From contig NC_083417.1 in assembly GCF_020745735.1 (NCBI RefSeq), forward strand, positions 75,702,001 to 75,766,000: a stretch of DNA of 64,000 nucleotides, read 5' to 3'. The stretch's first letter is position 1; each line of letters starts with the position of its first letter. A program made the position numbers and the translations under genes. The DNA comes from Hemiscyllium ocellatum. Taxonomy: Eukaryota. The notes below the pieces were generated by a model. That model ran no database searches, had not been told where the DNA came from, and saw only the letters and a program-made list of their open reading frames with translations. This document shows positions 25,753 through 63,839 of this stretch, piece after piece.

Positions 25753-26638
25753 AAACTAATCTACCAAACGTCAAGATGCATATTCAGCTGTCTCTGCATT
25801 GTATAGTCTATCATCCGTTGTCTGAATAACTGTTTAGCTCTGGTGTAGTTTTTCTGCTTTCTTTGTACCAAGTCAAAATGATTTTCCTCGGCTAAAAAGG
25901 AGATGCCGAGTATTAAAAGACAGAGATGATAGGTTGCTGTTGTAATGTGTATTGCTGGTTAAAGGGCAGCAGGTCAGGCATCATCCAAGGAACAGGAAAT
26001 TCATCAGGATTTAGGGAGATTGCAGAAGTTCGGGTTTTGATATGTTAGGGAAGGGGGGTTAGTGTACGTGAAAATGAAACTGGAACTGCTTCGTCTAAAG
26101 ACCGTATATGTCATCTAAAAGTGTATGTTTACAATATTCTCAGGGCAAAAAGGAGAGAAAACCCATAAAACTCTAAACACATTTTGTAGAAAAAACGAAT
26201 AATTTGCATAGAAAATGTGGACAGCAGACATTGAATGTTTTCTTGAATTGTAATCATGTATAATGATAAATAAAAACTGCGGTAAGGGTGTAAACCACCC
26301 AGCTCCAGCAACGAAACTGTTCTTGGATCCTGAACTCAGTGCACATTATTAATGACATGGTTCCAGTAGGATTCTAAAATAGAAAATGTTGGGACTTCTT
26401 TCCCTGGTTATGAAGAGGTCGAGAGGTTACCTGTTAAAAGCTTCTAAAATAATGAGGGGTACACATACGGTGAAGCGTCGTTGTATTTTCTCTAGAATGT
26501 GCGATTTCAAAACTAAGGGTGCACATTTTTAAGGTGAGAGGAAGAGAGATTTTAAAAAGGAATGAGGGGCAATGTTTTTACAACGAAATTGCTTTGCATG
26601 TGGAATGAACTTCCTGAGGAAGTGATGGATGTAACAAG

Positions 26639-41369: not shown

Positions 41370-43195
41370 GGGTAGGACTAAGGTAAACCCCAAGATAATG
41401 TATGCTTGTGTGAGGAAGAAAAGGATGACTAGAGGGTGGAGCCAATCATGGATAGCAAAGTTTCATAGGCATCAGAGGAGGTAGGGGAGGTCCTTGATTA
41501 ATACATTGCATCAGTATTCACTTCTGAGAGGAATCTTGATGTTTCTGAGGACAGCGTGAGACGGACTGATACGCGAGAACATGTTGATATTAGGAAGGAT
41601 AATGTGCTGAAAATTTTGAAAAAAAGTAAGGATAAATAAATCCCCTTGACCTTACGGGATATACCCTTGGTTACTACAGGAATTGAGGGAAGGGATTGCT
41701 GCATACTTGGTGATGATCTTTGCTTCATCACTGTCCACTGAAGTAGTGCCATATGATTAAGGGTGGAAAATGTTATTCCCTTGTTGAAGAAAGGGAATAA
41801 GGATAATCCAATGAATTACTGACCAGTCACTCTAATGTGTGTAGTGGGCAAAGTATTGGAGAGGATTCTGAGACACAGGATTTAAGATTACTTGGAAAAC
41901 CATAGTTTGGTTTGAAATAATCAGCACAGCTTTGCCTGGGGCAGGTCATGCCTCACAAAACTTACTGAATTCTTTGAATATGTGACAAAACACATTGTTG
42001 AAGATCGAGTAGTGGATGTGGTATATATAGACTTGAGCAAGGCATTTGATGACGATCCCCATGGCAAGCTCATTCAGCAATAAGGAGACATGGGATACTG
42101 GGAAAACTGGCTGCTTGGATACAGAATTGGCTGGCCCAAAGAAGACAAATGGTGGTGGTAGATGGAACCTTTTCAGCCTAGAGCTTGGGGATCAGCAGAG
42201 TTCCTCAGGGATCGGCTCTTCAACCTCTGTGCTTTGCGATTTTTATAAATGACTTGGATGAGGAAGTGGAAGGGTGGGTTAGGAAGCTTGTCGATGGTGG
42301 AGTTTGTGGAGTTGAGGATGGTGTGGAGGACTGTCGTAGGTTGCAACGCGATGACAGGATGCAGAACTGGGATGAGAAATGCCAGATGGAGTTCAACCTG
42401 GAAAAGTATGAAGTCATTCAATTTGGAAGAATGAATCTGAATGCAGAATGCGGGGTTAAAGGCAGGAGTCCTGGCAGTGTGGAGGGACACAGCAATCCTG
42501 GGGTCCATGTATATGGATCTTTCAAAGTTGCCACCCGAGTTGAAAGGGCCGTTGAGAAGGCATATGGTGCGTTCGCTTTCATTAAAAGGAGGACAGAGTT
42601 TAAGAACCACAAGGATTTGCTGCAGCTTCATACAGCCCTGGTTAAACCGCATTTGGAATATTGTATTCAGTTCTAATCATTTCATTGTGGGAAAGATGTG
42701 GCAGCTTTACAGAGGGTGCACAGGAGATTTACCAGAATATTGCCTGGACTGGAGGCCATATCTTACAAAGAGAGGTTGAAAGAGGTAGGACTTTTCTCAT
42801 TACTGTGAAGAAGGATGTGACGTGACTTGAAAGAGGTGCACAAGATATTGACAGGCATAGATATAAAGGATAGTCAGAGACCTCTTCCCATGGCAGAAGT
42901 GTCTACCATGATGAGGAATAATGTGAAGATAATTGTAGGGAAGTTTAGAGGCGATGTCAGAGGTAGGTTCTAACACAGAGAGATGGTAGGGTGCATGGAA
43001 TGCACTGCCAGCAGTGGTAGTAGAGTCAGATACATTAGGGACATTTAAGTGACTCTTGGACATCCAAGTGGAAGGAAATATAATGAAACGTATTCAGTTT
43101 TGTCTGATCTTTGAGTAGGATTAAAAAGCCAGCACAACATCGGGGGCTGAAGGACTTGTACTGTGTTGTACTGTTCTATGTTCCATGTTCTGTGA
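41370..43195 (+). mobile_element. Decayed CR1 ORF2 3' half with tail
   Basis: VPQGSALQPLCFAIFINDLD and ALVKPHLEYCIQF motifs, and a (ttctatg/ttctgtg)n tail at 43150-43230. Confidence 0.9.
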
Positions 43196-43301
43196 TTCGT
43201 GTTCTGTATTCCATGTTCTGTGTTGTGTTTTCTAATGGACATTTTGGTCAAGACACACAACAATCAAAAACGCCTTGCCATTAACAGACTTTTCATTGCA
43301 T

Positions 43302-43448
43302 TTATCGCAAAGCTGGCCTTTGTTTTTCCAAGTGAACCTGAGCATACTCTATGTCCTTTTCCCTATAATTTGTTCTCCCTGTTTTCCTGGGGGCTGACAA
43401 GTCTAAAGCCGCATAGGTCATTTTGTGATCCTGAGGTCCTTTCCTGGT
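43302..43448 (-). CDS. Terminal cytoplasmic exon with two tyrosine motifs: [48 protein letters not shown]
   Basis: Acceptor ttgttttcacag|ACC. In phase 0 it gives MTYAAL (ITIM-like) and IEYAQV (canonical I-x-Y-x-x-V ITIM). Confidence 0.82.
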   Translation of the reverse strand, partial: TRKGPQDHKMTYAALDLSAPRKTGRTNYREKDIEYAQVHLEKQRPALR

Positions 43449-46400
43449 CTGTGAAAACAATTTTCAAAATATCATTGGTTCAATATTTAGTCACTTGGAT
43501 TCAGGTGTTAGGTTAAGCAATAAAAATAGACAGCATCTCAATGAATTAGTGCAAGTGCAACAGAATTTTAAAAAAAGTATAATTGTAGATATTTCATACA
43601 CTGAGCTCAAATTGATTCTTAATTACAGTTATATGGTCATTGTGTTCTGAATCTTTCCCCTACCTGGGCATATGCTACCATTTCTTAATGCATTGGTCTT
43701 GGAGCCTTCTGTAAATTGTTCAGATTTAGTGCAGCATAAGGTGTCATCGCATCAGTTGGTCCCTGCATGATTCGACAAAAAATATATAAGTGTTAGTTCA
43801 TACCTATATCCATGTCTGTCTCTCTTTCTACCACTTGAAGTTTAAAATTGATGTCGCGACCAGGACGAGGAATTCTAATTATGGATACCAATAAAACAGA
43901 TACAATATCTACAAAGTCACCTGGGAGCATGTTTACTAAATGTCAGTAATAAACGAAACTGGTGTGTGCTATTTGGCCCTTGCAGTCAGTTCTGGTGTTG
44001 ATTAATCTTCAGTGATTTTACTTAAGTGCCATAAACCTTAGATACGTTTCTTGAGTCGAGTTAACGAGTGAACATCCAAAGTTCTATGTGGCACAAAATC
44101 CTTATCATTCTTAAATTTTGAAGAAAGAAGTGTCTCTTCTTATCAATATAAATCCATGAGTCAAACCCATCCAAGGAGGAAAAAACACATTTCATAAAGT
44201 CTGTCAAATTCCTCACAAACCAAATACTTTTGAACTCAATCACGTTTTATTCATCAATTCGCTAAGAGATGGTGGCCCACTCTGCACAATCTTCCATGAT
44301 AAAACTATCCATTTATTCCAGGAACCAGCGTAGTTTACATGATTAGACTCCCTACAGTGTGGAAACAGGCCCTTCGGCCCAACAAGTCCACACAGACCCG
44401 CCGAAGCACAACCCACCCATACCCCTAAATATACCCCTTACCTAACACTACGGGCAATTTAGCATGGCCAATTCACCTGACCCGCACATCTTTGGACTGT
44501 GGGAGGAAACCGGAGCACCCGGAGGAAACCCACGCAGACACGGGTTGAACGTGCAAACTCCACACAGTCAGTCGCCTGAGGCGGGAATTGAACCCAGGTC
44601 TCTGGTGCTGTGAGGCAGCAGTGCTAACCACTGTGCCACCGTGCCACCCTAAGTTGGATTCTACCAGTGTTAAGCATGTTCTTCGTCAGGCGGGGCAGTA
44701 AAACCTCAATTTTACCGAAACATTGTCTTATTAATGCCATGCACAATTGTCAGTTGTGCGAAGCTTTCACTGATGATTTTTTTTTGCTAGGTTATAATCT
44801 ATTCTCTTCTGTAATTGATTGCTGAAATTGCATGAGAACTTCCTGTAATTGAGCTGTGATGAGAAGAACATCCTTTGAACTGGAAATGTTCTTCTTTTGG
44901 TCGTGAACATTTAAATTGAGAGTTTGTACAGAACAGGATGTTTGCTATTGCTGCTTATGAAAGGAAACTGCTGTTATGTGCTCAGTCTGTCTATGGCACT
45001 TTGTATTGGAAAATTGCAACTTCATGCCAACTCATTTCTATGAGTTGATTTCACGAGAGGGGAAATGATGGACAAATAAGCCTCAAGTTTAGAGGAAGCT
45101 TCTTCATACCTTCTTAGCATTGTAGATAATGGAAGGAATGAGTCAATTCAATCCTAAGAGTTGAGGCTGAAATTGTCCATTTTCTCTAAATTCCGAAATG
45201 TCCCACATGATCTGAACTGAAAAGAAATGAAAGCAAGAACAATCTTCTATTCGATGTCTCCTGCTGTTCTTGACATCACGAACCACTTTTTAGTCTGGCA
45301 CAGGGTGCATCAAAAAATCACAAAATTGCTGTCGTCAAAATGCAGCATTCAGAAAAAAACGTTATATTTATTCTGCATCTGGAGACATCACTGATAATGG
45401 TAATTACCATTGTCAATTCCTACTTGACTGGTAAAGTTGGGCTTGTAAGTAAATGTCAGGTGGAGGATAAAAGTCAATGTCTGTGGATTGGACAATGCTA
45501 CATGCAAACTTAGCATATTACAGTGGTTTCTTTTCCTAAGAGACAAAAACAAACATTCTGTTCCGTACAAACTCTTAATTAGCATGTTCACAATAAAAAT
45601 ATTATAGCTACATTACACACCATCTGGCCTACTGATGTTTTTTGTTTTAATCCTGTGTCACTGTGCTGCTTTGCATAAATAATTACAGCAACAAAATAAA
45701 ATATAGCTATTGAACTAAATGCAAATTAGTTATATACAGTTATATTTTGTGTAAAAACACTTGCCTTGTGTTCATCATTATTGCATTTTTCATCATTGGT
45801 TTTCACTACTGCGTAAGAAATAAAGTTTAAAATGAATAACAATCCAGGAAATGCATTTCTGCAAAGCTTAACGCAGATCATAACATAATCCCCATACCAC
45901 AATTTTAAAAACATATTGGCCCACATTTTCTAGTGCCAGATAATTGACATTTCATCATGGATGGGAGCTGAGCATGAAGACAATATCGACCGCTCAATAT
46001 AGACGACTCCAAAAGAACTTCCAGGAAATTGAAGTTTACACGGGCATTTTTTCTACACTTAGAAGCCTCTGAAAGCATCCGCTTAAATTGCATTTGGATG
46101 TCTCTCGTTAAATTAAATGCAGACACTCACATCAAACCTTAAACTATTGAAGATGTAGTGCAACTCCTGAATAACAATACGACCGACAGGCAACATTTGC
46201 TCAGACATCTTGACCCGAAATTCCGTTCCTCTGCCTGGTATCTGACACCATGCTGGCCTGTGGAAATGACAAAACCCTGGACCAGCTCCTCTTTCACTGC
46301 CTTGCATTTCTTGGATCCAGCGAATGCCCTTTCCCCACAGTGGGCCTGATGGGACTCTCTCGCAGGATGTTGCCCGTTCTTAACATCTCTGAATCTATCT

Positions 46401-49400
46401 GCTTTCACAGCCATAAAACTGAACTTCCCCTTTGCCCCAGTTTAAATCTCATGCATTCCTGTTCCCAAAGCTAGATTCATCACCCATTTTTCCCTACTGC
46501 AGACACAGCTCCACTTCTCCCTCTCTGGACAGAGTCATTGAGTCACATAACATGGAAACGGACCCTTCAGCCCCACCAGTCCATGCGAAACAAGTTTCCC
46601 AAACTGAACTAATCCTACAGCCTGCATTTGGCCCAAATCTCTCTAAACCTTTCCTGTCTATTTGTCTATCCAAATATCTTTTAAATGATATAACTGTACT
46701 TGCATTGATCAATTCCTCCAGCAGATCATTCCACACGCAAACCCTCTGTGTGAAAAAGATGTACCTCAGGTCCCTGTTAAATCTTTCTCCTCTCATCTTG
46801 AGCTTCCCCACCTCAGGGAAAGGACTTTTGCTGTTCACCTTAGCTGCACCTCTCATGATTTTCTAAACGTTGATAAGGTCACTCCTCAACTTTGTAAGCT
46901 ACATAAATAAAATCTGTCTGTGACCCCTTTGGTTCAGGATCATCTTCCCCAGCACAAGAAACAACAGTCTAATTTCCTCACTTCAGACTTGGCGGCAACA
47001 CCATAACCTGTCCTGAAGAAGCTCTTTCCTTCCCTCACTTCAAACCCAATCTGACTGCTCCTTCCTGGGACATGTTGCCCCCTTCCTTGCTTGGGACATG
47101 ATATCCCTCTCGCCGAATTTCCAGTATGGTCTGTCTTTGCCCTTCCTAGAACCAATCCATGCTCTTCCCACGGGGAGACCTGATTCCCTTAGGACAAGAT
47201 AATCACTCCCTATTGCGGTCTGCCGGACCAAAGGTTTCAACTATCCTGATGCACCTAATGCACTGTATTACTTCACTGGCTGACTAGCGACTTCTCATAT
47301 TGCAGTTATCCATGTGCCATCCCACTATCCTATTCACCTGGCACACGACATCCTGTCAACGTATTCCCTCTCCATTTGGCATTCTGCCCACCTGGCACCC
47401 TACACCATAGCAGAATATCCGCCACCCAATTGGCATCCTGAACATTTGGCATAATTACCACCTGCCACCCTAATTCATATTAGCTTGCCACGTCATCTCA
47501 CTTGGCATCCTATTTATCTGAACTTCATCCAGATAGCTGCATCCCCTTGCAGCACCCTCACGTCATACTTACATTTGGTACCGACCACTTGATAGCTGGT
47601 GTGAAAGTGGCTGTCTGTGTGGACAGCTAAACTTCATAAAGGGGCAAGTGACGGCCGTGAAAAGGGGACTTAGTTTGCTTTTCCCTGACCACTCTGTGTT
47701 ACAAGAGAACTATTAAAATGGAAGCAGATCTTTGTGTTTCGGATGGATGCTTGATCAGAAACTACTTTCAGAAATATGGAGCTCTTCATCGCTGACATTG
47801 AAGGGTCTGGATGCCAATTTGTGTGAGATTGGCATTCCTCAGAAATATGCGCCCCTATATTTGTTTATGGTACATATTTTGATGTTCAAAAATGGATTAT
47901 TCATCAATGAATGCATGCTGGGAAACCTGCAGAGTTATTCTCCAAAAGCAATGATCCCAGACAATGAAATGATCTTCCTTTTGCAGTAAAGCACACTTGG
48001 CATGCTCATATCTCTGGGAGGTTGGATAAAATTTGAATATTGTACCTCATTGACCTTATATTGCCCTGGCCATGTCAGATAAGCTAAGTATTGTTTAACC
48101 TACTGAGTTGCACAGAGAAAATCTTGAGATATGGTGCAAAGTTAAAATTGACATTCCATTTGGACATGGTGCATTTCAAAAGATTAAATAAGTTCCTACC
48201 CATGTTTTTCTTTGCTGCGTATCGCTTCACCATGATGAGGCTGAGCACCAATAATATCAATCCACCTGATACAGTTGCAGAAATCATCAAATACTTTGTG
48301 AACACACAATCTAAAACAACCAAATCACAAACATCAATTAACATTGTTTACTGTTCATATCAGTTAACACGAGAGTGCAAAGTTAGGGTACACTAAATAG
48401 TTTTAGTCATGTCTTAATGGAATACATAGTCAACTACAGAACTGAACTTAAGTTTTCCACTTCTCTTTGGATTTTCAGACTGAGGTAACAATCTTTACAT
48501 TATTTGTCTGAAACCTGCAGAGGATATAAATCATGGTGAGTGTTTTCTCAGTCTCCTGGAGCTCATTAGACTGGAGTGGCACATAAAACGTCCATAATTT
48601 TACTGTAGAAAGGCTACTGAACTGTGTTGAGGAACCCAATGCCAGAGAAATGCCTGTGAGAACTATCTGTTAGTGAAATATTCCCTGCCAAACACCAGAG
48701 TTAAGACCAAACCTCTATAGTATCTCATTCAGATCGTGATGGGTGTACACTTGGATAGCTAACTCAAAACCCCCTCCAATAATTCACCGGCCTTTGCTTG
48801 CCCACTAGTGGTGCACTGTCACTCAAGGTAGTACATAATTTCTCTTTATGTGATGGACATGTTGCACTCAAAAGTCAAGACTACTATTTGTGGTACATTG
48901 TGACCAGAACAACTATAATGTATTGATGTGAGAAAAAGCATTGGGCATCCTGTCGGTGAAATTTCTTCCTCCTCAACAAAATTCAATGGTTAATTCTCGC
49001 AAATATCAACCATTCAAAAAATGACATTTCTGAAATCCTGTATACTCCCCATATTAACACTAGCCACAAGGAAGAATGAGGAAGAATGGACCTAGTTCTG
49101 AGAGGCACATCTCCGGCTTCATTATAAACATCAACAGTAATATGCTATTCGATCCTTTTGATGTTACAACATTTTTCAATGATTCACATAAAATCTTTTG
49201 GCTCCGTAGCATATGAAATGGTTATTAGAGTTGTGGTCATGAGACCATGAAGTAGAAAATGATGATTAACTTAGTTTATGTTTGACAGAAAGGAAAATGA
49301 AACAACAAATGAAGATTAAAGAGGAAAAAAAGGCAACCAAACGTGATGAGTGAAACTTGCATCATTTTCGCCTATGGAATTCATTTAAAGCAGAGACCTC

Positions 49401-52400
49401 CACACCAGAGAAAGCATCCTGAGACACAGCAAAAGGTATTTAGCATAGGCTTGGGCAACAAAGCAAAAGTAATCTTTTCACAGGAATGACCTCTTTCAGA
49501 GAAAGTAGCTTCTGCAAGCAACCAGTGGAGAAATATTTTGACAGAAGGCGATGCTGAACAAAAGTTCATACTTCAAACACAGCGGTAGAATGCAGTGCGA
49601 TTCCCTCAGCATTAGTGTGTCAAAGGACTGAGCAGGAGCAGCAGCAGAACAACATGTGAAGGTCATGGATTGATAAGATCATTGGTGATTGTGACATTGT
49701 ATACGAACTGGGAGACAGGAGAGAACAACAGAATGACATATAAAGACTGACATCTTCAGATAGGGCAATTTAATGCACATAGCTGCGTAATGTGCAGTTG
49801 TATTAAATAAATCAGAGAGACATTGTGATCTTAATCATATCATTTCGAGATGCATGCAGTGTCAATTGAAACTGAGCATGCAGTTTCATAAGATTCAGGG
49901 CGTCTGGTGAAATAAGATGCTCTCGAATGCTCATGGAATTCTTTAACTTGCGTCAGAGTAACATTGAATACAAAATCATGGAAGTCATGCTAAACATTTG
50001 CAAATTACCGTTTAGTTCTTTGATGCAAAATTATGTATAATCCAGGACACAAGACTCCACTTATAGGGCAGACTGGATGGTTCAAAGTGATCAGTGGTTT
50101 GAGATCATTTAAGGAATTTGAGAACTGAGAAGTTTCTCATGCGATCAAAGAGGTTTGTGAGAGTGGCAAAAGGATATGGAATCATGAAGTTTGAACGATT
50201 GAGTGAAGTGGAATGAGGGAATGAATAAACAACCTGCAATTATAACATTCAAACTATGCACAAAGATGCACAAATTAAGTGAGGACAACTACTTTCTGAA
50301 GGAGGTCAGGAAGATTGATAAAGCTCTTACAATAAATGTTTTTGTGAATGATTTACATAGAAATATAGAGAAATGCAGTGGAATCTGTGTTTTCGGTGGA
50401 CTAACTTGTTGAGGTGCAAATAGCACACAGTGGTATGGGAGTAAATCTGGCACCCCATTCAAAGTACCATATTGGTGTGATGGACCAAATATGCTTCAGG
50501 ACTCTTGGATTCTATGGGTGAACTTGCTGTTCTTGTCAGCATCCATTCACTCGTGGTTTGTGTAAAGCTTTGAAGCTTGGATGATGGTTGCAGTTGCTGC
50601 GGACATGTTCACCAAGTTGCAAAACAATTTCCCTGGCCAGTGAACATCCCCACAGCAACAGCATCCATTCATTCAGTTTGGAGGGTGCTATGAGTTCTGA
50701 TGCCGATTAAAACAATTACATTATAATGTAGAGGTGCTGGTGTTGGACTGGGGTGGGCAAAGCCAAAAGTCACACAACACCAGGATATAGCCAAACAGGT
50801 TTGATCTCTTTCTAGTTTATTAGCTGAGCAATGTTGTTTATCCCAATTTCAGTTCTGATGGCACTCTTAAAATGAATGAAATTGGAACATGTAATTCAAA
50901 CATTTGATCCCATGAAAGGGTTTGCACTACAGCGAGAGGTTGAATAGGCTGAGGCTGTCTTCCGTGCAACATCAGAGGTTGAGGGGTGACCTTATAGAGT
51001 TTTATAAAATCATGAGGGGCATGGATAGCGTAAATAGACAAGGTCATTTTCCTGTGATGGGCGAGTCCAAAGCTAGAGGGCATGGGTTCAATATGAGAGG
51101 GAAAAGCTTTAAAAGGGACCTAAGGGGAAACGTTTTCTCGCAGTGAGTGGTGCCTCCATGGAGTGAACTGCCAGAAGAATTGGTGGAGACTGGTACAATT
51201 ACAACATTTAAAAGGGCATATGAATTGGAATGGTTCAGATGATTACGGGCCAATTGCTGGCAAATGGGACTAGATTAATTGAGGATATCTGCTCAACATA
51301 GCTGAGTTGGACCAAATGGTCAGTTTCCGTGTTATACAACTCTATGAACCTATGATTCTAATATGCTAGTTGATCATTTTCTTATAACCGTTTATAATGT
51401 CACCCCTCAATTTCTGATGCTCCAGGGAGAACAGGCCCAGCCGATTTAGCCTCTCCCTGTAGTGAAAACCCTTTCATGCAATCTGATTTTTGAATGATGA
51501 ATGCCAATGTCATTCATTTTAAGATTACCATCAGAACTGCAATTGTCTTCAATTGAATTTGCAAAACTAAGAATGACTGCACGGCAGATAAGTTTAATCA
51601 CCCCAGTTTGTGATTCATCATAGCCTCAATGTCCATGTTTCCAATGTGGACTGTTCCCTTATCAATACGCAAGAATCTTTTTAGATGTTTTATGAAAAAC
51701 CTACTATCTCATTGCATCCATTGTGGCCAAAATTGGGACCAGTACCTCTGCTCTAACAGACACGAATTTAGCAATATGTTTACAACTTTATATCATGTCC
51801 TCCAGGAATCACATTGATGACAAATCTTCACTGAATGACTTTGCAAATGAATGTGTCTTGAACAGATGGAGTGAAATTGTATGATTCATGGATGACAGAA
51901 AATTTTATGATGATCAGCTAGTATGCAGTGCTGAACACAGGAGCTGATGTTAAACCATACAGGTAAGCATTTCAAAATGGAAGAAACTTACGTATGTAAT
52001 TACAAATGGCTGTACATCTTGTCAAAACAGCTGGGAGAGGCAGGATATTCTAAACGGTATTATTCAGAGGCAGATATGGTAGAACGTCAAGTTGCATATT
52101 CAGCTATCTTTGAAGGGGCCATTGTAAGAATCTTAGGTTAAAAGAAAAATCCCCAAAGAACTGTGGATGCTGGAAATCAGAAACAATAACATAAATTGTT
52201 GAAAACACTCAGAAGGTCTGGCGTAATCTGTGGAGATTCAATGGTTCAGCTCCAGTGACGTTTTTTTTTCAGATAAGTGCATCACTCTGCAGACATTACA
52301 CTGAACATGGAGTGTAGATTCGTAGCTCCTTGAAAGTAGAGTCGCAGATAGACTGGATAGTGAAAAAGGGGTTTGATATCCTTTACTTTATTTCAGAGCA

Positions 52401-55400
52401 CTGAGTACAGAACATTTTGCAGCTGGACATGGGTTCGGCCACTTTTGGAATATTGAGTGCAATTCTGGTCTCCTTCCTATGGGAAAGATGTTGTGAAACT
52501 TGAAAGTGTTCAGAAAAGATTTACAAGGATGTGCCAAGGTTGGGGGATTTGCGCAATAGGGAGAGGTTGATTAGGCTGGGGCTGCTTTCCCTCGAGCGTC
52601 GGAGGCTGAGGGGTGACCTAATAGGGGTTTATAAAATCATGAGGATCATGGATAGGATGAGTAGACAATATATTTTCCCTGGGGTGGTGGAGTCCAGAAC
52701 TGGAGGGCATAGGTTTAGGTGAGAGGGGAAAGATATAAACGAGACCTCGGGGCAACATTTTCAAATGTGGTGGTCCGTGTATGGAATGAGCTGCCAGAGA
52801 AAGTGGTGGAGGGGATTAAATTTGCAACATTTAAAGGACATCATGATGGGTATATGAATAGGAAGTGTTTGGAGGGATGTGGGGCAGGTGCTAGCAGGTG
52901 GGACTAAATTGGGTTAGGATATCTAATCGGCATGGACGGTTTGGAACCGAAGGGTCAGTTTCCATGCTGTACATCTCTATGGCTCTATTTTGGACTAACA
53001 TTTTGCCTTTCAAGGTAATGCGAAAATATCTGCCTCATAATTCCTTTTATTTGTCCTTTTGTTTTTGAATAAACTTTCCAATACATATAATAGTTGTTGA
53101 TTGTTGTCACATCATGCAGATCAATAAGTTTTTAAAAAGTCTGACAACTACAGATGCTGAAAATCGGAAACAAAGCCAGACAAGGACAAGTTGGGCCGAA
53201 CTGTCTGTTTCCGTGCTGTACATCTCTGTGATTCTTTGACTCTATTAAAACCAGAGTTAAAGAAAACGATTGCATGTCTCCCATTCAAACTTTGTTGCAG
53301 TATTGGTGCAAAACATTATAAAAATCAATGTTTAGCATCATGTCAATTCCATGGACACGTACTTGCATCAGTTATCACAGTGAAAGACACCATCAGCATA
53401 CCTGAATTTCAAGAGATTCAAGAGGCAATGGTGAGTGCAGCGGCAGTTACAAGCAAAATTTGCTGGGTAAGCTGAAAGATGTGAAGGTAAATAAATCAAC
53501 CATACCAGACATACAGCTCTGAGATCTGAAGGAGACAGCGAAGGGGATCGTAGGGACATTTGTGGTGATCTGTCAGGAATCATTGGACGCAAGGCAGGTT
53601 GCAGAGGACTGGAAAATAGCTAAAATTACTCACCTGTTTAATGGCAGCATGGTTTCTCAGTGGTTAGCATTGATGCCTCACAGCGCCAGGGGTTCTGGTT
53701 TGATTCCAGCCTCGAGTGACTGTCTGTCTGGAGTTTGCACATTCTCTCATGCCACAAACTCTTAACATTCGCCTGTACCTGTGTTTTTATTTTTCCTGCT
53801 TCTTACCTATTATTTACTATCTATGCTACTAAATATCTGATCTGACTTTACTGCTCGCATGACAAAACTTTTCACTGTGCCTCAGTAGATGTGACAATAA
53901 TTTCAATTCAATTCAAGAGGAGGGAGAGTAGCATTGCTAATTAGAGGGACAAACACAGCTGCAGAAAAGAAGGTTGTTGTGAAGTGTTTGTCTACTGAGT
54001 CAGTATGGGTGGGAATCAGTAACAGAAAAGGAGCAGTCACTTTATTGGGTGTTTCTAAAGACCCGCCAATAGCAGCACAGAGATGGAAGAACACATTGGA
54101 AAGCAACTTTCAGAAAGGTGAAGATGTGTCAGAATTGTTGTTATGCGTGACTTCAACTTCCGAATATTGATGGGAATCTCTTTAGTGCAGATGGTCTGGA
54201 TGGAGCTGATTTTGTCAGGTGTTGTCCAGAAAGGATTCCTGACTCAATACTTAGGTAATATTAGGTTGGTGCTGAAAAAGCACAGCATGTCAGGCAGTGT
54301 CCAAGAAGCAGGAAAATCGATGTTACAGGCAGAACCGATTTTCCTGGTCCTTGGATGCTGCTTGACCTGCTTTGCTTTTCCAGCACAACTCTAACATTGA
54401 CTCTGATCTCCAGCATCTGCAGCCCTCATTTCGCCTACTCGATACGTGGGCAGGCTGACTGGGGGGAAGCCACATTGGATTTGGTGCTAGGCAACGAGCC
54501 AAGGACCAGTGTCAGATCTCTCGGTGGGAGACCGTTTCGGTGACAGTGATCACAACTGCCTCACCTTCACCACAGTCATGGACAGGGAAACGAACAGACA
54601 GTATGGAAAGGTATTTAATTGGGGGAGAGGAAGATTATAGAACTATTCGACAGGAGCTGTGGAGGATAAATAGGGAACAATTGTTCTACGGAAAATGCAC
54701 AACGGAAATGTGGAGGCTGTTTAAGGACCATTTGTTGCGAGTGTTAGATAACTTTGCTTCACTGCGACAGGCAAGGAATGGTAAAGTGAAGGAGCATTGG
54801 GTGACAAGAGAAGAGGAGCTTCTTATCAAGAGGAAGAACGAAACGTACTTATGGTTGAGGAGGCAAGGATCTGTCACAGCTTTAGAGGATCACAAGGTAA
54901 TTTGAAAATAACTCAGAAATGGACTGAGGAGAGCTAGGAGAGTTCACGAAAAAGCATTAGGGGAATAGTTAATGAAAATCTAAATGCATTCTACACTTAA
55001 AGTGAGGAATAAGAGAATGATCAGAGAGAGGTTAGGGACAGGTCATGCCTCACAAGCTTTTTTTGAGTTCTTTGAAGATGTGACGAGACAGGTTGCTGAA
55101 TAGCGAGCAGTTATGTGTTGAATATGGATTTCAGTAAGACATTTGATGAGGTTCCCCATGGTAGGCTCATTCAGAATATTAGGAGGTATGTGATACAGGG
55201 AAATGGGGTTGTCTGGGTACAGAATTAGTTGGCCGAAAGAAGAAGCAAATGATAGTGGATGGAAAGTATTCCACCTGGAGGTTGGTGACCAGCGGTGTCC
55301 TGCAGAGATCTGTTCTTGGGCATCTGCTCTTTGTAGTTTTTATATCGGACTTGGATATAAATGGAAGGGTGGGTTAGTAGGTTTGCCAATGACACAAAAG

Positions 55401-58400
55401 TCGGTTGTGTTGTACATAGTGTTGAGGGCTTTTGCAGGCGACAACAAGACATTGACAGGATGCAAACCTGGGCCGAGAAGTAGCAGATGTGTTTCAACCT
55501 GGATAAATGTGAAGTGATTCATTTTGGAAGGTCGAATTTGAATGCTGAATATAGGGTTAAAGACAGGATAGTTGGCAGAGTGGAGGAAATACATGGTTCT
55601 AGCAAGAAAAACGTACAACTTTGGGACTTGCTTCCCTGGAGATTAGGAGGTTGAGAGGTAACTCGATAGAAGTTTATAAAATAATGAGGGGTACAGATAC
55701 AGTGAAGGGTCGTTGCCTTTTCCCTAGGATGGGTGATTGCAAGACTATGGGCACATATTTAAGGTGAGAGGAGAGACATTTTAAAAAGGCATGAGGGGCA
55801 ATGTTTTTACACAGAAGTTGGTTCGCATGTTGAATGAACTTCCTGAAGAAGTGATGGATATGGGGACAATTACATTGTTGAAAACACATTTGGGTAAGTA
55901 TATAAATGGGAAAAGTTTGTCGGGATTACAGAGCAGGAGCAGGCGGGTGGAACTAGTTTCGTTTGGGATGAGGTTTGTCATGGACTTGTTTAACATAAGG
56001 GTCTGTTTCCGCGTGGTATGATTCTAAGTATCACAGATTTGATGTGATTTATTAATAATATGGTTCCAGTAGAAGTCTTACCCGTGTTGCCATTCATTAC
56101 GATGTGACTGACCGTGGCTGAAATTTGGAGGGTGCTGTGGGATACCATGCAAGTATAAACAGTTCCGGCTCGGATTGCCTGTGTTTCTTCCAACCAGCTC
56201 GATGCTTCGTATCGACTGTCGTCTGTTGCTTGAATGACTGTACTGATTCTTGTTGTAGTTTTATTGCCATCTTTGTACCAACTAAAACTGATATCCCTCG
56301 GGTAAAAGGGAGATGTGGAGCATAAAACAGCAAGAGTCACGGATGGATCTTTTTCAGGCTGCTGTGAGAGAATATTCAGTGGAGTCGGTGGAACTAGGGA
56401 AGTGAAAAGGAAGATAAAATAAAGTTATCTTGAGGTCAGAAGAGGATTACAGCCCAATCTTTTGTTTTGGTCCACTGCTGGACAGTTACTGTCCAGTTGT
56501 CGGGAGATGTGCTCATGGTGGTGAGGGTTGGACAATTCTCGCTGTTGGTGCCGAGATGCGAACATCGTACAGTATCAGAGGGAATATTAACTCATCCCCG
56601 GACAAAGTGCGGGCAAGAAAATGTGGACCGATGTTGTTACAGATCTCAGTTTTTCTGTTGGAAATAACTGTTGATAAGCTCCGGAATTGGATCCATGATT
56701 TGCTATTGCCGGTGGTGCAATAAGACAGCGGTGGAAATGACATAATAACAGATGGAAAAAAATAACTGATCCAAAACTGACACAGAAGTCAACGTAGTCA
56801 CTTACTTATTGCAAAGCAAAAACATGTGGAGTGTCCCGGACGGTGGCTTCAGCAGTTTTTAGATTTTAGCAATATCTGCTGTCTAAATTTTAATATTTAC
56901 CTATTAAAATCACACCAGCAAAAAATGAACCCGGTGCTAGAAAAGCAGAGCAAGTCAGGCAATATCCGAGGAGCACGAAAATCGACGTTTCTGGCAAAAG
57001 CCCTTCATCATGAATGCTGCCTGAGCTGCTGTGCTTTTCCAGTCTCCTGTCCCTCGGATGCTTCCTGACCTGCTGTTCTTGTCCAGCCTCCTGCTCCTCG
57101 CATACTGTCTGAGCTGCTGTGCTTTTCCAGTCTCCTGCCTTTCGGATACTGTCTGACCTGCTGTGCTTTTCCAATCTCCTGCTCCTCGGATAATGCCTGA
57201 CCTGCTGTGCTTTTCCAGTCTCCTGCCCTTCGGATACTGTCTGACCTGCTGTGCTTTTCCAGTCTCCTGCTCCTGGGATAATGCATGACCCGCCGTGCTT
57301 TTCCAGTCTCCTGCCCTTCGGATACTGTCTGACCTGCTGTGCTTTTCCAATCTCCTGCTCCTCGGATGTTGCCTGATCTGCTGTGTTCTTCCAGTTTCCT
57401 GCCCCTCGGATGCTGCCTGACCTGTTGTGCTTTTCCAGTCTCCTGCCCCTCGGATTCTGCCTGACCTGCTTTGCTTTTCCAGCAACACACTCTGGGTTCC
57501 AGCCTCCAGCATCTCCAATCCTCACTTTCGTTTAAAAATAAGCCCGTCAAGAAAAGCCATCAATGAAAATAAACAAAAATTGCTGGAGAAACTCAATAGG
57601 TCTGGGAGCATCTGTGAAAAAGCCGGGGTTAAATTTTGGGCACCAGGTAACCTTTTTCGCAACTGTCAATTTTGAGTGAAGAAGATGTTAAAAATAAATA
57701 ATCAAATATGAACAAATCTGTGTCGCTCACGACAGTCTATTGCCCTTAACCAATATCGTGGAAACGTAGGAGAAAATTACTTCAGATATTGGAATCTGTC
57801 TTGAGAGCAACAAATACTGGCGATCACAGCCAGTTAGGCAGCATCCATGGAGAGAGAGCACGTTAACGTTTGGATGACCTTTGATCAGGGCATGTATCTT
57901 TTCATCATATTGCAATAGTACTTGAGATTCCTGTCTATGGCCCACGGCTGTATAATTCAGGTGCAACTGCTAATACATTATTCTAAACTATTGAAATATT
58001 GAACATGAATTACAGCAGTCAGCGATGCAACTTAAATGTGGGCATGTATCACAAACTGCGGAGATGTTTCCAAGGAGCGCACACACACCGCCTGCCATTT
58101 GGGCCTGCTTGGACACTATGTCACTCAAAACATACAGCAACGTTGCTGACTCTCAACAACTCTCCTTATTGACCAAGGATTTACTCAGTTCAAGGATAAT
58201 TTGGGTTGGACAAAAATGTTAACTGGCCATTGAAGACATAAAACATCAAATACATTTTTAATAAATCCTGTAATGTGAACTTTCCCAAGCCAACCCGAGA
58301 ATTACTTCAAATATGTAATATTACTTGTCTATATCGCTTACATCTTGCTTTCATACATACCCCACACAGTTAAATTGGACCCTGTTCCGTTTCCAATCAA

Positions 58401-58902
58401 TTTGCCTTGATGGACGATTGTGCAATTGTACATTCCTCTGTCCTGTACATTGACATTGATTATCTGAAGGAAGCCACCGAATTTAGTCTGGAGGCCAATT
58501 ATTTTTCGGTCATCTTGTTCCGCGTTGAGATAATGAGGATCACCTTGCTTCCACCAGGTTACCTTGACAGCTTGGCCATCTTGAAATAAAGGAATTGAGC
58601 AATAGAAGCTCACATTTGCACCCACTGTTCCAGTCACGTTCGCTGGTAACTGGTTCACTGTAACCGAGATTACCCCAGAACCTACAGAAAAAGACATTAA
58701 CAAACAAACTATAGCAAGATTAAATAAAGAGTGGTATTCAGTAATTGACTTAACCTGTCCAAACGAAAATTGTACACGGTATATGAAATAAAATTAAATA
58801 ACAGGTCGACTTTACGGAAAGGCAATGCACCTTAGAAAGAGAAAGAATACCTGGGAAAATTGCTGTCTGAATAAAACAGAAAAGTGCAATACTCAGGAAC
58901 AT
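43302..58902 (-). CDS. Non-rearranging VJ-C1 Ig-superfamily type-I membrane receptor with dual-ITIM tail (SIRP/NKp30-like architecture), about 326 aa, spliced model
   Basis: Exons 58902-58851 (leader), 58681-58361 (V), 56393-56082 (C1), 48310-48200 (TM), candidate 47610/47614-47573, and 43448-43302 (ITIMs). All boundaries are canonical GT-AG, L/V/C1/TM are phase-1 compatible, and no exon has an internal stop. Confidence 0.85.
44340..44646 (-). mobile_element. Young full-length HE1-type V-SINE in the last intron
   Basis: A-box TGGCACAGTGG, B-box GGTTCAATTCC, V-SINE core and CR1-like tail gggccgaagggcctgtttccacactgtaggg. Confidence 0.93.
46500..46900 (-). mobile_element. CR1 3' fragment
   Basis: [23 protein letters not shown] motif plus tail. 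Confidence 0.88.
47573..47614 (-). CDS. Candidate first cytoplasmic exon with tandem acceptors 4 nt apart
   Basis: Strong donor AAAT|gtaagt. Acceptors ccacacag|ACAG|CCAC give a 42-nt exon (phase 1 to 1, [14 protein letters not shown]) or a 38-nt exon (phase 1 to 0, [13 protein letters not shown]). Confidence 0.45.
48200..48310 (-). CDS. Stalk/transmembrane exon: (D)[36 protein letters not shown]
   Basis: Acceptor ggttgttttag|AT and donor ATGG|gtagga, 111 nt, phase 1-1. An uncharged 22-aa hydrophobic stretch is followed by a KR stop-transfer signal. Confidence 0.85.
50905..51350 (+). mobile_element. Intronic CR1 3' fragment
   Basis: [16 protein letters not shown] motif. Confidence 0.88.
52300..52985 (+). 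mobile_element. Intronic CR1 3' fragment
   Basis: [20 protein letters not shown] motif plus tail. Confidence 0.9.
53380..56025 (+). mobile_element. Intronic CR1 patchwork (endonuclease, RT, 3' end) with an inserted SINE head (about 53640-53750) and a PLE mini-element
   Basis: GFLTQY...[11 protein letters not shown] endonuclease motifs, RT remnants, and the [16 protein letters not shown] 3' motif. Confidence 0.8.
54251..54436. mobile_element. Foldback PLE mini-element with both hammerhead cores deleted, inside a CR1
   Basis: TSD actcaatac (54242-50) / actcgatac (54437-45) interrupts the CR1 GFLTQY|VDRPT sequence. Confidence 0.75.
56082..56393 (-). CDS. C1-set Ig domain exon
   Basis: Acceptor cttttcacttccctag|TT and donor ACGG|gtaaga, 312 nt. 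Reads PPTPLNIL...[23 protein letters not shown]...[10 protein letters not shown], with the C1 hallmarks FYP, W and YxCxVxH. Confidence 0.93.
56925..57530. repeat. PLE mini-element whose right arm expanded into a 44-bp minisatellite (about 10.5 units, about 57010-57482)
   Basis: Unit tctcctgctcctcggatgctgcctgacctgctgtgcttttccag, with gcttttcc at 57121, 57165 and 57209. Flanked by a normal left arm and the normal pseudo-LTR end. Confidence 0.9.
58361..58681 (-). CDS. Germline-joined VJ-type (V-set) Ig domain exon
   Basis: Acceptor tctttttctgtag|GT and donor TGGG|gtatgt, 321 nt. Contains B-strand Cys (FYC), C-strand WW, DRGMYNC, and a J-like GTGSNLTV in the same exon. Confidence 0.93.
58851..58902 (-). 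CDS. Signal-peptide exon [17 protein letters not shown](G)
   Basis: ATG at 58902, hydrophobic core, phase-1 donor CCAG|gtattc, and a 169-bp intron to the V exon, as typical for Ig-type leaders. Confidence 0.85.
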
Positions 58903-63665: not shown

Positions 63666-63839
63666 TTATGAGATGCTGGTTTCTCCGAAGACGGCCTCAG
63701 TTGCTCCGGTTGGTGCTGTTACTTTTAGCTCGGCAGAGTCTGGAATCTTGGCGTTTATGTTCAGTTTTCTGACTTTGCTGGTGCCGTTCAATTCGAGACT
63801 GGCGGACGTTAATTCATCGTCTGCGTCCGATTGTTCCAT
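63666..63839 (-). CDS. Terminal cytoplasmic exon of a probable upstream paralogous receptor, tyrosine-free
   Basis: Acceptor gaacttcatag|ATG in phase 0 gives MEQSDADDELTSASLELNGTSKVRKLNINAKIPDSAELKVTAPTGATEAVFGETSIS*, which is colinear with exon 43448-43302. Confidence 0.65.
   Translation of the reverse strand: MEQSDADDELTSASLELNGTSKVRKLNINAKIPDSAELKVTAPTGATEAVFGETSIS

Follow-up and report, generated by a model that had tools for sequence, protein, structure and literature searches.

Can a gene laid out like a single chain of an antigen receptor, with its V and J-like segments already joined in the germline, encode an inhibitory receptor? A locus of Hemiscyllium ocellatum raises this question. 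It lies in a 64,000-nt stretch of DNA (hereafter the window; NC_083417.1, positions 75,702,001 to 75,766,000), which belongs to an 84,986,831-bp contig (C50) of the 3.98-Gb genome. An initial annotation of the window had described a five-exon receptor here, with a leader, a V domain ending in a J-like strand, one C1-set domain, a transmembrane segment, and a tail with two immunoreceptor tyrosine-based inhibitory motifs (ITIMs). We find that the locus is likely a germline-joined, non-rearranging VJ-C1 inhibitory receptor gene of a SIRP-like multigene family of cartilaginous fish. We favor this reading because the exons are in frame, V-set and C1-set domains are encoded, the NCBI protein model of a paralogue (P0164) uses homologous exons, and the tails of the family resemble that of SIRP-alpha. 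The gene does not appear to be a 1:1 orthologue of SIRP, UrIg or UrIg2, NKp30, or an antigen-receptor chain. Coordinates below are those of the window unless C50 is named.

A Seven-Exon Gene Model

The receptor gene lies on the minus strand of the window. All five exons named in the initial annotation are present with canonical AG...GT borders, and the first four (58902-58851, 58681-58361, 56393-56082, and 48310-48200) are in phase 1, the usual border pattern of immunoglobulin superfamily genes. The exons stand, but their proposed join does not. Together they amount to 943 nt (1 mod 3) and are out of frame, with the transmembrane exon ending in phase 1 and the tail exon at 43448-43302 open in phase 0 only. 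Because these phases disagree, joining the two exons directly leads to a stop after about 20 residues. In homologues retrieved with the V exon, the tail is encoded by three exons 3′ of the transmembrane exon. Two exons missing from the five-exon version, at 45805-45765 and 43762-43664, were located by a frame-aware scan, direct reading of the sequence, and comparison with the closest paralogue (paralogue A). The corrected model has seven coding exons with consensus splice sites and an in-frame coding sequence of 1083 nt.

Exon 1 (58851-58902, 52 nt) supplies the start codon (ATG at 58902) and most of the signal peptide, ending in phase 1 at a GT donor at 58850; its N-terminus, MFLSIALFC, is common to the gene, P0164, and the bamboo-shark protein P0166. 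The V-set domain and its germline-joined J-like G strand are encoded by exon 2 (58361-58681, 321 nt, phase 1 to 1), and the single C1-set domain is encoded by exon 3 (56082-56393, 312 nt, phase 1 to 1). Exon 4 (48200-48310, 111 nt, ending in phase 1) encodes a connecting peptide with Cys230, an uncharged transmembrane segment, and the stop-transfer sequence KRYAAKK; it is 82% identical to the transmembrane exon of paralogue A that is used in P0164. The cytoplasmic exon 5 (45765-45805, 41 nt, phase 1 to 0) has a TAG acceptor and a GC donor (AAG/GCAAGT), and both the exon and the donor match those used in P0164 (DEHK/GITD).

Exon 6 (43664-43762, 99 nt, phase 0 to 0) encodes the first tyrosine-motif pair, TPYAAL ... 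VAYAQ(T), and in the reference is interrupted by an in-frame TAA. P0164, P0152, P0153, and P0003 have a homologous tail exon. In the gene, exon 6 is flanked by a good branch point, a polypyrimidine tract, a CAG acceptor, and a GT donor. Exon 7 (43302-43448, 147 nt) encodes the second pair, MTYAAL ... IEYAQV, and the stop codon; its homologues are the last coding exons of P0152, P0153, and P0160. From the sequence, we predict that this seven-exon gene is expressed and spliced as described.

Other ways of joining the exons were considered. A donor at 48231 (GTGAAG) would mend the five-exon frame, but it was rejected because the paralogue and family models keep KRYAAKK and use the 41-nt exon. Two alternative sites at exon 5 would likewise preserve the frame, namely a GT donor at 45759, 6 nt further downstream, and an AG at 45808, 3 nt further upstream. 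The bamboo-shark model P0166 is uninformative on the tail, as it reads past the GC donor into the intron.

Two introns contain repeats. A 44-nt tandem repeat in intron 2 (57017-57482; 10.6 copies, 83% matches) gives rise to long open reading frames (ORFs) at 56890-57550, in several frames and on both strands, which we do not regard as coding. In intron 5, positions 44200-44800 are a very high-copy repeat, with a summed contig depth of 10^5-10^6 in four DNA runs versus about 5-15 in the flanks.

V and C1 Domains of the Ectodomain

The translated V exon matches the Pfam V-set family at 36.3 bits (cutoff 26; E = 6.8e-9), and the C1 exon matches the C1-set family at 53.2 bits (cutoff 21; E = 3.8e-14). 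The J-like strand was placed correctly at the outset: it lies in the V exon itself, directly before the GT donor, and in the family profile it aligns with the J of immunoglobulin (Ig) lambda and with the J-like strand of SIRP-alpha d1. Because the V domain and the J-like strand share one open exon, the gene has no separate V and J segments and is non-rearranging. A tblastn search found one C1 exon only between the V and transmembrane exons, in agreement with the single C1-set domain first described.

We compared predicted structures of both domains with Swiss-Prot models and the Protein Data Bank (PDB). The AlphaFold model of the V domain (pLDDT, a per-residue confidence score, of 90.9) has as fold neighbors NKp30, CD79b, CD8-beta, Ig kappa V, T cell receptor (TCR) V, and shark IgNAR V; no SIRP is found among its top 30-50 structural neighbors. 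For the C1 model (pLDDT 85.7), the matches listed include the beta2 domain of major histocompatibility complex (MHC) class II beta chains and, in the Swiss-Prot list, the Ig delta constant region, with TM-scores (a measure of fold similarity) of 0.75-0.84. Among the matches listed, the structural neighbors of both domains are V-type or C1-type only. In sequence, the C1 exon matches UrIg2 (the top hit), Ig constant domains, and SIRP-alpha/gamma in the PDB. The V-domain profile was useless for family assignment when run against PDB sequences, since the summed scores of multi-Ig proteins (titin, contactin) dominate.

Transmembrane Segment and Tyrosine-Motif Tail

The transmembrane segment (residues 238-256) is uncharged, and Cys230 lies between it and the C1 domain, both as originally proposed. 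We surveyed these features in 71 sampled family proteins. A Cys between C1 and the transmembrane segment occurs in only six of them, so Cys230 is no hallmark of the family. Transmembrane segments are present in 54 of the 71, and 34 of these 54 carry ITIM-like or ITSM-like motifs (ITSM, immunoreceptor tyrosine-based switch motif), often four or more. Eight sampled members, mostly short-tailed, have an Arg or Lys in the transmembrane segment. By analogy, the combination of a transmembrane Arg with a short tail in some members fits paired receptors with activating partners.

Of the tail, the first description captured the half that lies in the last exon, MTYAAL and IEYAQV. Two exons together encode the four motifs of the full tail, and the stop in the reference allele comes before the second of them. 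In the allele that reads through, the paired tyrosines are 22 residues (TPYAAL/VAYAQT) and 23 residues (MTYAAL/IEYAQV) apart.

Tails of the family were scored, with shuffled sequences as the baseline, against the bis-tyrosine (BTAM) peptide of SIRP-alpha printed in PMC5589908. The last-exon modules of the family reach a median z of 4.75 and a best z of 8.9 and are collinear with the peptide over both tyrosines. In one example, a chimaera module ending in ...NTEYAEIQ aligns with the SIRP-alpha peptide ITYADLNLPKGKK...HTEYASIQ. A protein search with a tail alone (P0153 residues 280-368) retrieved family members only, its reach being limited by the word index and the database size. On the tails, Pfam matched nothing but the SHP2-interacting adaptor SIT, and that below threshold (E = 0.03); we did not count it as evidence.

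A Polymorphic Premature Stop

The TAA in exon 6 (43685-43687, 21 nt before the exon 6/7 junction) is polymorphic and reads CAA (Gln) on another haplotype. We mapped four public runs (X2-X5) on 43000-48999; their even depth over introns identifies them as DNA resequencing, which is uninformative on splicing. Run X2 carries A>G at 43687 on the plus strand (depth 9.65 of 9.65), giving CAA on the coding strand, and runs X3, X4, and X5 carry the reference base, so that one of the four resequenced individuals has CAA. Because X2 differs while the other three agree with the reference, the stop codon is a real allele. In homologues, the residue encoded here is Q or H.

The CAA allele is predicted to encode 360 amino acids with four motifs in two pairs, TPYAAL/VAYAQT and MTYAAL/IEYAQV. 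X2 differs from the reference at two further sites. At 45809, C>T abolishes the upstream AG of the exon 5 tandem acceptor, which is consistent with use of the TAG acceptor; at 43786, A>G changes the exon 6 polypyrimidine tract at about half depth. The three differences together suggest a distinct haplotype.

A Large Family Seen in Cartilaginous Fish

The genome contains 59 matches to the V exon and 65 to the C1 exon, of which 56 and 53, respectively, are on C50. They form clusters at about 58.8-59.2, 63.1-64.5, 72.0-72.8, and 75.7-76.0 Mb, and where coordinates were compared, V and C1 matches are about 1-4 kb apart on the same strand. By these sequence matches, the gene is one of about 55 family loci on C50. 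The homologues (roughly 60 with source species checked) all come from sharks, rays, skates, and chimaeras, and we found no published description of the family in the searchable literature. The suggestion of a little-characterized shark receptor family is supported and extends to a large family of cartilaginous fish.

Most homologues are named PTPNS1 (SIRP-alpha)-like or SIRP-beta-1-like by NCBI. Others are called Ig lambda-1 light chain-like, tapasin-related-like, NCR3LG1-like, CD276 homolog, MHC II beta-like, or TCR beta-like. These automatic names are inconsistent and are not to be trusted at face value. In the ESM Atlas, a chimaera member lies nearest to the "PTPNS1-like" and "Signal regulatory protein alpha" clusters (score 0.97), which we treat as a lead only.

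The nearest relative in another species is bamboo-shark P0166, 83% identical over residues 1-282. The closest paralogue, paralogue A, is represented by P0164 ("signal-regulatory protein beta-1-like isoform X2"), is 78% identical, and lies on C50 at 72.6 Mb; the V sequence of P0164 is identical to the translated V exon at C50:72605001-72625000. There, the first tyrosine-motif exon has no GT donor (CAG/AT rather than CAG/GT) and runs on to a stop, and no second motif exon was found. As read from their sequences, the gene and paralogue A are two sister genes in which the same tail has been shortened by two different routes.

Compared with paralogue A, the V exon has a nonsynonymous rate (dN) of 0.148, a synonymous rate (dS) of 0.093, and a dN/dS of 1.59; for the C1 exon, dN/dS is 0.59. 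Taken as bare ratios, these values suggest diversifying selection on the predicted ligand-binding domain.

Evidence Against the Assignment and Alternative Readings

Several observations weigh against an inhibitory receptor at this locus. No RNA run on record matched the V exon or the C1 exon when each was used as a query. The gene's own protein does not occur in a collection of 5.8 billion proteins that does hold paralogues from the same genome, and NCBI may therefore not call the gene coding. The reference allele predicts a protein of 304 amino acids that ends after TPYAAL, with one motif. Measured at positions −2 and +3 against the strict ITIM consensus, S/I/V/L-x-Y-x-x-I/V/L, only IEYAQV fits; MTYAAL and TPYAAL deviate at −2 (M or T) and VAYAQT deviates at +3 (T), variants that are conserved across the family. 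The gene's own tail aligns weakly with the SIRP-alpha peptide (z 1.5-3.1, with 3.1 for its own last-exon module). Per V-C1 unit, the full-length family profile scores 66.8 bits against Ig lambda, 65.5 against SIRP-alpha d1-d2, and 61.4 against UrIg2, so that by sequence the ectodomain appears about equally far from all three and does not by itself assign the family.

Relatives of the gene also include damaged copies. In paralogue B (C50:72645001-72665000), a TGA interrupts the V exon, and about 9 kb further downstream there is a broken C1 copy; both are probably pseudogenes. Within the window, a degenerate remnant of a family C1 exon on the minus strand at 25789-25909, with an in-frame stop (SASPF, a stop, then PRKIILTWYKESRKTT... 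TVIQTTDDRLYNAET), marks a dead copy that lies downstream of the gene at a distance of about 30 kb. At 63666-63839, also on the minus strand, lies the tail exon of the adjacent family member on the upstream side, a gene that extends beyond the window. It reads DDELTSASLELNGTSK...IPDSAELKV, and both module tyrosines (LTYASL and xEYAEL in relatives) are replaced by Ser; this tail therefore cannot be tyrosine-phosphorylated.

One explanation would be that the reference copy is itself a decaying, non-functional family member, a young pseudogene whose first visible lesion is the nonsense codon. The TAA, the protein missing from the collection, the blank RNA searches, and the broken relatives nearby would all fit such a copy. 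We consider it unlikely, as no other exon of the seven is interrupted, all splice sites are intact, and the stop is polymorphic with an intact allele in existence. Even the stop allele leaves the whole ectodomain, the transmembrane segment, and one tyrosine motif. Nonsense-mediated decay is governed by a 50-55 nt rule, and with the stop only 21 nt from the last junction, the mRNA should therefore escape it. A V-domain dN/dS above 1 together with a constrained C1 domain argues for selection, as neutral drift would push both ratios toward 1.

A different way around the stop would be to skip exon 6. Joining the 41-nt exon straight to exon 7 keeps the frame (99 nt, phase 0 to 0), bypasses the TAA, and gives a predicted receptor of 327 amino acids with exactly the two motifs first described, MTYAAL and IEYAQV; the Heterodontus member P0160 lacks exon 6 in its NCBI model. 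Most full-length homologues nevertheless include this exon, and its branch point, polypyrimidine tract, acceptor, and donor are all in good order, which makes skipping an improbable account of the gene.

Is the gene then the shark orthologue of SIRP-alpha itself, the CD47 receptor of myeloid cells? The NCBI names, the similarity of the tail modules, the nearest ESM Atlas clusters, and a PDB match of the family profile to SIRP-alpha at 7.8e-31 would point that way. Against this, a single C1 domain stands where SIRP-alpha has two, the gene belongs to a set of about 55 fast-diverging copies, and no SIRP is among the top 30-50 structural neighbors of its V domain. In humans, syntaphilin (SNPH) is a neighbor of the SIRP locus; in the shark, C4 and C19 carry the two syntaphilin-family genes and C50 carries neither. 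A genome Pfam search for CD47 was blank, but its control was blank everywhere too, so no conclusion follows. Orthology with SIRP-alpha is very improbable. MHC class I matches fall on C113 in all 82 cases and never on C50. Neither MHC linkage nor conserved SIRP synteny is supported, the latter judged on one marker and hence on a thin basis. That the gene might be a germline-joined Ig light chain or TCR-like chain we can practically dismiss: in its favor are the V-J-C1 layout, the name "immunoglobulin lambda-1 light chain-like" given to some relatives, and a family-profile score of the Ig lambda V-C unit as good as that of SIRP-alpha, but the transmembrane and tyrosine-motif exons are conserved across the family and have no counterpart in Ig light chains, the transmembrane segment is uncharged, unlike that of TCR chains, V and J are not separate segments, and the MHC class I genes are on another contig.

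The likely reading thus remains that of an inhibitory receptor gene in a SIRP-like family, and the core of the initial proposal, a non-rearranging VJ-C1 transmembrane receptor with inhibitory-type tyrosine motifs, is supported. Its novelty is lower than had been claimed, given the NCBI names that refer to SIRP-alpha and SIRP-beta and the collinearity of family tails with the SIRP-alpha peptide. A clear 1:1 orthologue was not found.

Predicted Signaling and Allelic Variation

In the mechanism that we propose, the V domain would bind a ligand, and Src-type kinases would phosphorylate the paired tail tyrosines, spaced 22-23 residues apart as in the SIRP-alpha module. By analogy with that module, SHP-1/SHP-2-type phosphatases would then bind the paired phosphotyrosines through their tandem SH2 domains and damp cell activation. 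The haplotypes would differ in this capacity, with the reference haplotype producing the 304-residue receptor with TPYAAL alone and the other the full 360-residue receptor with a four-motif tail. If exon 6 is spliced in, the reference haplotype is probably a hypomorph, a weakened inhibitor that keeps only TPYAAL. A segregating nonsense allele that strips three of four signaling tyrosines would offer a natural experiment on inhibitory-receptor dosage.

Elsewhere in the window, a 386-residue ORF on the minus strand at 745-1902 contains a reverse-transcriptase domain (RVT_1, 1.2e-23) and is most likely a fragment of a LINE-type (long interspersed nuclear element) retroelement.

Comparison with Known Receptor Systems

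NKp30 (NCR3) is the best Swiss-Prot structural match of the V domain (E = 5e-8, TM-score 0.76-0.80, 21-24% identity) and is matched in the PDB as well (3noi); both are non-rearranging VJ-type domains. NKp30 consists of a lone V(J) domain with a charged transmembrane segment that pairs with CD3-zeta, is MHC-linked, and is not known to have a C1 domain or an inhibitory tail. The shark gene differs in its C1 exon, its uncharged transmembrane segment, and its tyrosine-motif tail, so that the similarity is confined to the V fold.

Teleost NITRs, hagfish APAR, and the lamprey TCR-like gene are multigene systems, often paired, with germline VJ-type V domains and ITIM-bearing members. A C1-set domain behind the V domain is not known from any of these systems, and our searches retrieved none of them. 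The set of VJ domains listed in the literature comprises CD79, NITR, SIRP, CD8, and NKp30 (PMC11599192).

The UrIg and UrIg2 genes of sharks (PDB 9dmx) resemble the gene in having a single-exon VJ domain followed by C1-type domains, and UrIg2 is the top PDB sequence match of the gene's C1 domain (5.3e-19 as the sum over three domains). In the nurse shark UrIg2 has nine C domains and in the epaulette shark eleven; it is linked to the Ig/TCR complex, and UrIg is MHC-linked (PMC12227049). Our gene, in contrast, has a single C1 exon where UrIg2 has 9-11 C domains, and it lies on a contig without MHC class I genes. The term "ITIM" appears nowhere in PMC12227049, whereas the shark SIRP-like family is defined by its tyrosine-motif tail.

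The SIRP family combines a germline J-like V domain, C1-set domains, and bis-tyrosine tail modules (PMC12975943, PMC2785349). SIRP-alpha (SHPS-1/PTPNS1/CD172a) resembles our gene in its N-terminal V domain with a germline J-like strand, the C1-set domain(s) that follow, and a single uncharged transmembrane segment. Its tail likewise consists of two bis-tyrosine modules (xTYAxL ... xEYAx[VIL]) with tyrosines 22-24 residues apart, an arrangement found in the CAA allele of the gene. The likeness extends to SIRP-beta, which the family members with a transmembrane Arg and a short tail resemble. The differences are equally specific. SIRP has two C1 domains and the gene has one, although its relatives P0003 (skate) and P0168 (chimaera) have two. 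In the structural models, the V fold appears closer to NKp30, IgNAR V, and TCR V than to SIRP d1. The family has a fast-evolving V domain, counts about 55 loci on a single chromosome, is seen in cartilaginous fish only, and is not linked to syntaphilin homologues.

Since 2009, the combination of VJ-type V and C1-set domains in SIRPs has been put forward as an argument for their kinship with the antigen-receptor precursor (PMC2785349). The family could in turn be a surviving pre-RAG lineage of antigen-receptor type, sister to SIRPs and to Ig/TCR and not itself a SIRP derivative, that is used as a germline polymorphic system of paired inhibitory and activating receptors in which tail-truncation alleles tune signaling; we hold this broader idea to be decidedly unlikely. 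The family is a third set of non-rearranging VJ-C1 genes, one that is much larger and occurs in all lineages of cartilaginous fish. It joins the minimal V-C1 layout of a TCR or Ig light chain to an inhibitory tail of the SIRP type, and it belongs in phylogenies of the antigen-receptor precursor.

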